A stretch of DNA of 63,854 nt, the filler included, from Lenisia limosa (taxonomy: Eukaryota; Protista; Breviatea): assembly GCA_001655205.1 (NCBI GenBank). It is 7 parts of 7 records of this genome, joined end to end, with 100 filler letters (N's around TTAATTAATTAA, not from the genome) between each part and the next. Parts side by side here need not be neighbours in the genome. Positions count along the whole stretch, not along the records: positions 60,018 to 62,744 come from LPNZ01001274.1; 6 more parts are not named here. One strand, written 5' to 3'. Position 1 is the first letter of the stretch. Each line of letters opens with the position of its first letter. Made by a program: the position numbers and the translations under genes. Of the stretch, positions 60,018-62,744 are shown piece after piece. A model generated the notes under the pieces. It made no database searches. It was not told the origin of the DNA and saw only the letters and a program-made list of their open reading frames with translations.

Positions 60018-60969
60018 CTCGTCATACGTCTCGATGTCATAGAGGGCGGGAAGAACAACATTGGCTTGGTTGGGTTTCATGATCTGGAATGTGACAGAAA
60101 CGAGGCAATCGTACCTTGTTAAGATACTCAATTCCGGTTCCACCGAATCCGAGGGCGACAGAGGGGCCAAAGAAGGGGTCTTGGAAGGCAGACATGAACA
60201 TCTCACCTGAACAATTAGCAATCATCCGGGGAGTCAATGGGTAGATTAAGGATCATTCCAACATGTGCAGAATACGATGGTTCCACAAAATAAAGAGATG
60301 AGTTGATGGTCATCATACCTCCAAACTGCTCAGGAAGGTCCACCATGTAACGGAAGACGATACCTCTCAAGTCAAACTCGGTGTCAAGGAACTTGTTTGC
60401 GAACTTCTTAGAGAAAGAGGGAATCTCCTCCGACTGCCAGGGTCACGACAACGCACAAGCAGACTTACCTTAATGTTGAAGCCAATAGCACCAATGTCGG
60501 TCTTATGCGTAACCAGCTTGTCGTCTTCATAAACAACTCCCTTGGCCACCCATGGACCTGAGAGTCAAACACTGCTCAGAACTTCCTACCAGGGTGAGGC
60601 ATATCCTTGCAGAACTCTTCAGCATTATCACCACATTGATAGTACTTGTATGGAGGGATATGCAGTCCAATGCTGTCGAAAACTTCATATGCAAGGTGTC
60701 TTGAAAAATGAGGAATCTAAAAAGAGACTCACTCTGGAACGTCTCCATCACCCTGAGACACATTTAAAAGCATTTTCTCCAGTGAATCAGCATTGGGGCC
60801 CAAGAAAGAGGGTGCTGAGTAAAAAGCCTGTACGGATTAATTCTGGGAAACAGCGAAATCCAGGGAAAACCTTAAAACTCACCTGTGATACTGCAGGTAA
60901 CACATTAAAGGCGGTCTTTGTGAAAGGAAGTAGACCAACAGACTTAATTGTCTGAGCAAGAGCTAACAT
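60018..60969 (-). CDS. ADP-forming acyl/acetyl-CoA synthetase, beta-type ATP-grasp domain at the N-terminus preceded by a 29-aa extension; 3' truncated
   Basis: DVPEHLAYEVFDSIGLHIPPY...GPWVAKGVVYEDDKLVTHKTDIGAIGFNI...GEMFMSAFQDPFFGPSVALGFGGTGIEYL matches the ACD-beta motifs HK(S/T)DVGGV and DP.FGP.V.FG.GG...E. Confidence 0.82.
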
Positions 60970-61362
60970 TTTTATTTCTTCTCTAGAACGCTAAAACCTC
61001 TCTTTTCAAACAGCACCCGTTCAAAAACTCTGTCAAAAAAACCGTTTCACAAAAGCAGTTTTATAGCAAAAATACCTGGGGGTAGAGAGCTGCTGTTGCT
61101 TTTAATCCAACCCCATCACCACCGTTCACTGCATCACTGCAATCACACCCACACCCACACAGTTAACCTCATTAACATTTTTTAACGCTTAGAAGTCAGA
61201 AAAGAGTCGTTCTCTCAGGTACCGCCGATCACAACGCCCCTTCCCCTTCATCCATCTGACTCAACGTTCCACCTGCTTACCTAATGCTTACCCTGCTGAA
61301 CTAACCAAGCAAAGCCAACTTAATCCAAGCACCTTCAGCTTTCCTCTGTTGTGAACGTCTTC

Positions 61363-62142
61363 ATGTCAAAATTCAAACTCTCGAAGCTGGCATACGACAC
61401 GGCTAATGACCAAGCACATTATTGTGTGGCGTCATGCACCCATGCCGGTCTGAGGACACTGGAAGGAGTGGTGCAATTCTCCTCCATCACTGAGCTGGTT
61501 GTGTCACATAACGAACTGGGCTTTGACGACTCCGACGATGACAATGAAGACGAGATCGATGTGCATTCCCCTCTTCTTGCTCTGAAGAAGCTTGCTGTGC
61601 TTGACCTTTCCCATAATCAGTTGGACACCGTGTTGCCGTGGAGCCATTCTGAGGGATCACCTGTCATTTCCGAAGCAGATTATTCCTTCAACAGGATATG
61701 CACTCTCCAGCCCAACCTTGGGGCTGAGCATGTCTTGCTCAAGAAGTTGAACCTTGACGGTTTGTTTCATTAATCTAATTCGATAATAATCTCGACTCGC
61801 TGGATGGCCTTCAAAATGCTGTCAGTTTAACGTGGCTTTCGGTTAACAATAATCAACTTGAGAACCTCAATGGGATTGAAGGTCTTTCATTGCTGTATCT
61901 TTCTGTTCACTCAAATTTAATTGACGGTATGATTAGATTTTTTAATGTTAGATCTTCTCCCTTTGGCAGAAGTCCCATCACTTTTGGAACTGAATGTCAG
62001 TAACCAAAAGATCTCCTCAGTCCAGGACCTTCACAATTTGAAGCATTTGGTCAAACTGACTCTAGACGATACGACGGTCACAGACATTGGATGCCTCTCC
62101 GATCTGCTCCACCTTCGGTTTGCTGGAATTTCTCGACAATAA
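61363..62142 (+). CDS. SDS22-type leucine-rich repeat protein, LRGUK/LRRC23-like (likely flagellar)
   Basis: ITELVVSHNEL, LAVLDLSHNQL, ISEADYSFNRI, LKKLNLD|DNNLDSLDGLQNAVSLTWLSVNNNQLENLNGIEGLSLLYLSVHSNLI, LLELNVSNQKI. The repeat order resembles the LRGUK N-terminal LRR region (from memory). Confidence 0.8.
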
Positions 62143-62744
62143 GAGCAATAATTGGAATACTTTTTTCAAACGACGAGGATGGCTTCAGCCCCATTTTATA
62201 TTCTTCAATTCTACCATTACCATACTGCCTTGGGTGTACAGTACCATAATAATACGTAGTATAACATTGAGTCCATGAAACACAGTTATTTTAATGGATT
62301 TTTGACAGGTTGAGGGATTTTCTGAGTAATTGAAGAGAAAAGGTAACTATGTACCGTCTTTGATTATTATAGTTTTCCTTTTTTGTACAATTCTTTACCA
62401 AGAATAACTCTTCTTTCACATCACCATTGATATGTGATTTTGAGGAAGGTTCTCTTGTATCCAAGATTCCAAGCAGTATCGCCCAAGCATTTGAATTCTG
62501 AAATCAAGTAATCTAGCTCGGATTGAGCCGATATATTCTCTCGATATCGCATAACATAGGGCGGGCATATGGCGGTCCATATGGCTTGATTATTGAATAT
62601 GTTGTATTAGTTGAATGAAGATAGATCAGTCTCTGTTTTCATGATAATTTTGTTGAAAATGACCTCAGGGACTGCGATCGATAATCCCAATAACTAGGGG
62701 GTTAATCATCCTTTAATCATTTCTAAATATCCTTGTCGTATTTC

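Follow-up and report, generated by a model that had tools for sequence, protein, structure and literature searches.

The window is a stretch of 63,854 nucleotides, filler included, from the Lenisia limosa assembly GCA_001655205.1, and the part of it studied here, positions 60018-62744 (LPNZ01001274.1, hereafter the piece), carries two divergently transcribed genes, an LRR gene on the plus strand and its neighbour on the minus strand. Lenisia limosa, an anaerobic amoeboflagellate, belongs to the breviates within Obazoa, and both genome and transcriptome data, in fragmented form, are available for it. The LRR gene is interrupted at 61760-61782 by a segment of 23 nt, GTTTGTTTCATTAATCTAATTCG, and direct reading of the piece shows that an earlier note, made on this DNA from its sequence, had given the coordinates and the letters of this segment exactly. 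The features of the locus are collected in Table 1.

Table 1. Features of the LRR gene and of its minus-strand neighbour, in positions of the window.
Feature	Position	Strand	Basis
LRR mRNA, 5' untranslated part	61148..61362	+	RNA contig starts at 61148; ATG 61363 is the start of EukProt protein P0038
Coding part of exon 1, MSKFKL...LKKLNLD plus a phase-1 G	61363..61759	+	translation equals P0038 residues 1-132; RNA contig
23-nt intron, GT..CG; equivalent cuts 61758-61780 (CG..TT) and 61759-61781 (GG..TC)	61760..61782	+	gap in RNA contig
TTAAT, favoured candidate for the branch point; its A (61773) precedes the final intron G by 9 nt	61770..61774	+	sequence motif only
CTAAT, second candidate for the branch point; its A (61778) is 4 nt from the intron end	61775..61779	+	sequence motif only
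Exon 2, 144 nt, (D)NNLDSLDGLQ...HSNLID	61783..61926	+	translation, RNA contig, P0038
Canonical 25-nt GT..AG intron, TTAAT 6 nt from its end	61927..61951	+	25 letters left out of RNA contig at 61926
Exon 3, ...LLPLAEV...LSDLLHLR	61952..62117	+	translation, RNA contig, P0038
Start of intron 3, donor GTTTGC	62118..62744	+	RNA contig departs from the piece at 62118; no RNA depth further on
ADP-forming acetyl-CoA synthetase-like neighbour, local intron reference, six GT..AG introns	60018..61018	-	RNA contig joints; weak ATP-grasp_5 match
Introns of the neighbour gene (31, 112, 35, 32, 33 and 55 nt)	60084-60114, 60207-60318, 60434-60468, 60558-60589, 60700-60732, 60828-60882	-	

Exon 1 leaves G61759 as the first base of an unfinished codon, and when its frame is read through without splicing it continues for GLFH only and stops at a TAA at 61771-73; the end of the exon and the in-frame stop had both been described correctly in the earlier note. 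The LRR reading comes back in another frame from 61783/61785 (DNNLDSLDGLQ...), and this downstream frame is closed on its upstream side by a second TAA, at 61776-78. The two frames have no stretch in common, which means that neither an indel of one base nor a ribosomal frameshift could bring them together. Taking out the 23 nt gives ...LNLDDNNLDSL..., followed by the 144-nt exon 2 and then by a 25-nt GT..AG intron, and the spliced codons of the piece (about 450) contain no in-frame TAA, TAG or TGA.

Contigs from two public runs of one 2016 study were aligned to the piece, one run being a polyA metatranscriptome (X1) and the other having no library type on record (X2). The sole RNA contig over the LRR gene, an X1 contig of 1105 nt, aligns to 61148-62118 with no mismatch over 923 nt, the 5' UTR included, and with two gaps only, which together account for 48 letters: 23 are left out at 61758 and 25 at 61926. 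The depth that carries the 23-nt gap is the total depth (29.5/29.5) and none of the X1 contigs aligned to the piece retains 61760-61782, in evidence that consists of assembled contigs, a form that drops rare isoforms. The X1 contig of the minus-strand neighbour shows six skips of 31-112 nt, all of them GT..AG, and the RNA run thus reports ordinary splicing correctly. The X2 run contains the whole piece unspliced on one 2755-nt contig at depth 33, and for this reason we took it as the DNA source. Two intron-specific 31-mers were sampled; both occur in X2 and neither in X1. The segment 61760-61782 is therefore precisely removed from polyA mRNA, and it behaves as a U2-type intron would in being absent from that mRNA yet present in genomic DNA (X1 vs X2). 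A ribosomal frameshift or bypass was rejected, since the mRNA itself is without the 23 nt.

The same junction is found in a protein of EukProt, EP01086_Lenisia_limosa_P014067 (P0038; 281 aa), which is the product of a Trinity transcript and was found in the 90% identity cluster of the genomic ORF (P0001). It reads LNLDDNNL across the junction, the L-D-D-N-N-L that the earlier note had obtained by removing the 23 nt on paper, and contains ...LKKLNLDDNNLDSLDG... and ...SNLIDDLLPLAE...; the translation of 61363-61759, 61783-61926 and 61952-62118 is identical to its residues 1-236. The Pfam LRR_8 domain covers residues 110-158 and spans the junction, which falls at residues 132/133, and by its features the protein looks like the SDS22/PPP1R7-type LRR proteins. 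The spliced junction, which the earlier note had proposed to look for, is thus present in assembled form in the polyA-RNA contig (Logan) and in the Trinity/EukProt protein, and the 144-nt exon and the 25-nt canonical intron that it had predicted hold as well, both introns being missing from the RNA contig. Both transcript assemblies, that of Logan and that of Trinity, were probably built from the reads of this one study.

A HMMER search with exon 1 against 1.84 billion representative proteins returned only the genomic ORF and generic LRR proteins of plants, ticks and metagenomes, the latter with at most 48% identity over short stretches, and a homologue search with the full LRR product gave nothing at E <= 1e-5. 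No close relative of the LRR protein was thus detected in that set, a result that extends to other breviates if their transcriptomes form part of it. Two JGI metagenome matches (L002 and L003) are 33% identical, and the first of them carries one uninterrupted ORF of 1037 aa.

Beyond 62118 the X1 contig of the LRR gene ends in a loose stretch of 182 nt (GAACTTTCCGTTCAAAG...) that does not match the piece, and the last 45 residues of P0038 (237-281) gave no convincing tblastn match (best E 0.19) to the SPAdes contig NODE_5449 (L001; coverage 30) of ENA assembly ERZ3820729, which carries the genomic ORF and contains the piece exactly. These residues are not encoded on the contig, which puts the acceptor of intron 3 either at a distance of over 626 nt or outside the contig, whereas no other local intron is longer than 112 nt. 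A 26-nt GT..AG at 62118-62143 is tempting as intron 3 but is not the one used. The stretch 62118-62744 is AT-rich (GC 0.32-0.39) and shows no RNA depth. On the other side, the neighbour gene (60018-60969 within the piece, minus strand) has a mitochondrial-presequence-like N-terminus (MLALAQTIKSVGLLPF...) and a weak match to ATP-grasp_5 (E = 7.8e-5, below the cut-off of Pfam), suggesting that it may encode the ADP-forming acetyl-CoA synthetase of an anaerobic mitochondrion-related organelle. Most of this gene lies past the left edge of the piece, and its transcript was assembled as a contig of 2568 nt. Nine further letters (TCTTTCTTG on the plus strand) stand at the 5' end of this contig, beyond 61018, and have no match in the genome; they may be a product of the assembly or a short leader added to the transcript at its 5' end. 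Only about 130 nt separate the two divergent RNA contigs at their 5' ends (61018 and 61148), a spacing that points to a very compact genome and a shared bidirectional promoter region.

The dinucleotide CG stands just before the 23-nt segment and again at its end, and this direct repeat of 2 nt allows three equivalent cuts for one and the same mRNA, CG..TT, GG..TC and GT..CG. None of the three ends in AG, the possible ends being TT, TC or CG, so that the 3' end of the 23-nt intron cannot be AG. The GT..CG cut is the only one that combines a GT donor with a terminal G, and the GTTTG of its donor is seen again at 62118, where intron 3 of the LRR gene starts. The GT..CG intron put forward in the earlier note stands in that no cut ends in AG, but the position of the cut is ambiguous by 2 nt. 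No AG occurs within 42 nt downstream of the CG acceptor. The AGs ending at 61825, 61862 and 61881 would give introns of 66, 103 and 122 nt, the first leading to an immediate stop, the second to a frameshift and the third (61880-81) to an in-frame product that loses 33 residues; none of the three is used in the assembled transcripts. The first AG that keeps the frame does delete LRR sequence, as that note had argued, but at a cost of about 1.5 repeats and not of about two.

We also compared the 23-nt intron with the other introns of the piece. There are eight complete introns, seven GT..AG and one GT..CG, with a local range of 23 to 112 nt and with six of the eight at 23-35 nt. A TRAY motif is found near the 3' end in 6/8 and is missing from the other two; in the five of these six other than the 23-nt intron, the motif and the 3' end are 6-9 nt apart. 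The 23-nt intron has two motifs of the YTRAY-like kind shortly upstream of its 3' end, as expected of a U2-type intron: TTAAT, whose A61773 is 9 nt before G61782, this being the first G past the motif, and CTAAT, whose A61778 is only 4 nt from the end. The latter, which had been named as the branch in the earlier note, is indeed present, but it is the less likely candidate because its spacing falls outside the 6-9 nt of the neighbouring introns.

In light of these data, the best reading of the segment is a constitutively removed, tiny spliceosomal intron of the U2 type with GT..CG ends, to which we give a probability of about 85%. Cryo-EM of the post-catalytic spliceosome has shown that the 5' G of the intron and its branch A are what recognises the 3' AG, and Parker and Siliciano reportedly described in 1993 that the two terminal Gs of an intron interact. 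We propose that in the very short introns of Lenisia, with branch sites 6-9 nt from the 3' end, the second catalytic step would reach a very small window of sequence. In the 23-nt intron TTAAT (A61773) would act as the branch, and G61782 at +9 would be the only G in reach and would hence be used as the last base of the intron. This G would preserve the known non-Watson-Crick contact with the first G of the intron, while the contact between the A at -2 and the branch A would be lost yet tolerated, probably because there is no competing AG, the next one lying 52 nt past the branch. The simplest history would be an A-to-C change at position -2 of a former ...TTAG acceptor, now TTCG, that did not stop splicing. 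The local spacings, which come from eight introns at one locus, two of them without TRAY, are consistent with such a distance-from-branch model without proving it.

A broader proposal follows the short-intron class that the earlier note suggested from this intron together with RPL4, a case that lies outside the piece. In Lenisia, or in breviates as a whole, tiny introns would form a class found throughout the genome and including the 23-nt intron; their 3' cut would be set by the distance from the branch, a terminal G would be sufficient for them, and they would end in something other than AG much more often than introns do in other eukaryotes. The acceptor G at a typical spacing of 9 nt from TTAAT, as the first G past the motif, and the very short introns of the locus would both suit such a class, and a class of this kind could have escaped notice, since no description of breviate introns was found in the searchable literature. 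However, seven of the eight complete introns of the piece do end in AG, and the single case is explained equally well by one tolerated mutation; we therefore regard the class as rather unlikely. The rule that it implies for Lenisia, and perhaps for breviates, would be that splicing takes the first G some 6-9 nt past the branch adenosine, with the adenine at -2 dispensable and with NG acceptors forming a sizeable, length-restricted class, and this we put forward only as a doubtful generalisation of the GT..CG intron.

It is far less probable that the 23-nt gap is not of spliceosomal origin and reflects a DNA polymorphism or an intronless transcribed paralogue, a template switch of the reverse transcriptase at the CG repeat, or an excision of the IRE1 or tRNA type. 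Although the segment is flanked by the 2-nt direct repeat and XBP1/HAC1-type introns are of similar size, the same RNA contig is also without the neighbouring 25-nt GT..AG intron and aligns to the piece over 923 nt free of mismatches, and the only X2 contig over the stretch has the 23 nt, with no intronless DNA copy seen among the X2 contigs. Artefacts of template switching make up a minor part of the molecules, and two assemblies would not contain such a form and no other; the assembled form also restores the reading frame. The RNA fold of the 83-nt region is no better than that of shuffled sequences (z = +1.08), and this lack of a stable structure argues against endonuclease-type introns: there are no twin stem-loops of the HAC1/XBP1 type, the IRE1 loop motif CNG|NNGN is found at neither cut, neither having C at -3 and G at +3, and no bulge-helix-bulge of the tRNA type is seen in the minimum-energy or the centroid fold. 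An introner or nonconventional hairpin intron was rejected as well, the ends of the intron being unpaired with each other and the only repeat being the 2-nt direct CG, and so was a U12-type intron, given the 5' end GTTTGTTTC instead of RTATCCTT and the absence of TCCTTRAC from the 23 nt. A search of the piece for minor snRNAs gave a single match, to U6atac at E = 0.98, which is a chance match.

The least probable alternative, by a small step, is a genomic consensus that is off by one base, the true sequence being ...TTCAG and the intron a canonical one of 24 nt, a case that the earlier note had itself raised as fatal to its proposal: the mRNA alone cannot separate a 23-nt from a 24-nt intron with the identical junction, and every DNA datum comes from the single run X2, in which alone the two sampled 31-mers were found, but those intron-specific words are there, the site is not a homopolymer, and the SPAdes contig and the Logan X2 contig, from two assemblers, agree exactly at about 30-33x.

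As a U2-type intron with a non-AG end, the GT..CG intron joins a rare kind that is already documented. Among the 'rule-benders' of FlyBase there are eight GT-CG introns of Drosophila, all eight with RNA-seq junction support and all eight beside a similar alternative splice, and GT-TG and GT-GG introns occur in Drosophila as well (PMC4528330); TG acceptors are used as alternative sites in 36 human genes (PMC2374985). The intron of Lenisia resembles these fly and human introns in its GT donor, in the terminal G that is kept, in that only the base at -2 is changed and in the support of its junction by RNA. Unlike the GT-CG sites of the fly and the TG sites of human genes, which are alternative sites, its CG form is the only one assembled and has no AG in the 42 nt downstream, and unlike the non-AG introns of both it measures only 23 nt and resides in a breviate protist. 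Its distinguishing traits thus appear to be an apparently constitutive CG acceptor, its length and its breviate host.

Short introns are known from several protists, those of Paramecium being about 25 nt long. To our knowledge, canonical GT..AG ends and a narrow range of lengths characterise the tiny-intron classes described from other protists. Sizes of 15-16 nt are cited for heterotrich ciliates, 16-17 nt for mikrocytids and 18-21 nt for the chlorarachniophyte nucleomorph (PMC10245619). The 23-nt intron is like these in falling within the range of 15-30 nt and in having a branch-like motif very near the 3' end; unlike them, the local introns of Lenisia extend from 23 to 112 nt and one of them ends in CG. 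With U12-type introns it shares the tolerance of a non-AG 3' end and a short distance from branch to 3' end, whereas its 5' end, GTTTGTTT, does not fit their consensus and their branch motif is missing. The introners of Amoebophrya (PMC7789003) and the nonconventional introns of euglenids have terminal inverted repeats of 8-20 nt that form a hairpin, together with direct repeats of 3-5 nt, and average lengths near 120 nt or more; the introns of Amoebophrya at large have medians above 200 nt. Borders other than GT..AG and a short direct repeat that makes the cut ambiguous are common to these introners, the nonconventional introns of euglenids and the segment described here, but the latter shows no pairing from end to end, has a GT donor and is 23 nt long.

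The 3' AG is among the most constant signals of eukaryotic genes, and exceptions to it are usually minor alternative sites that adjoin a normal AG. In the LRR gene of Lenisia a non-AG acceptor is apparently the sole site used, in a deep-branching relative of animals and fungi, and this would provide a natural example in which the second step of splicing can make do with the final G of the intron and its distance from the branch. Gene prediction in Lenisia and in similar short-intron protists should allow for introns of 20-30 nt and for non-AG acceptors, or else such genes will be called broken. If the relaxed rule were true, Lenisia would offer a natural system in which the choice of the 3' splice site is made by a molecular ruler and not by recognition of AG, and if such introns prove to be frequent, it would be a useful model for the selection of the 3' site by the spliceosome.
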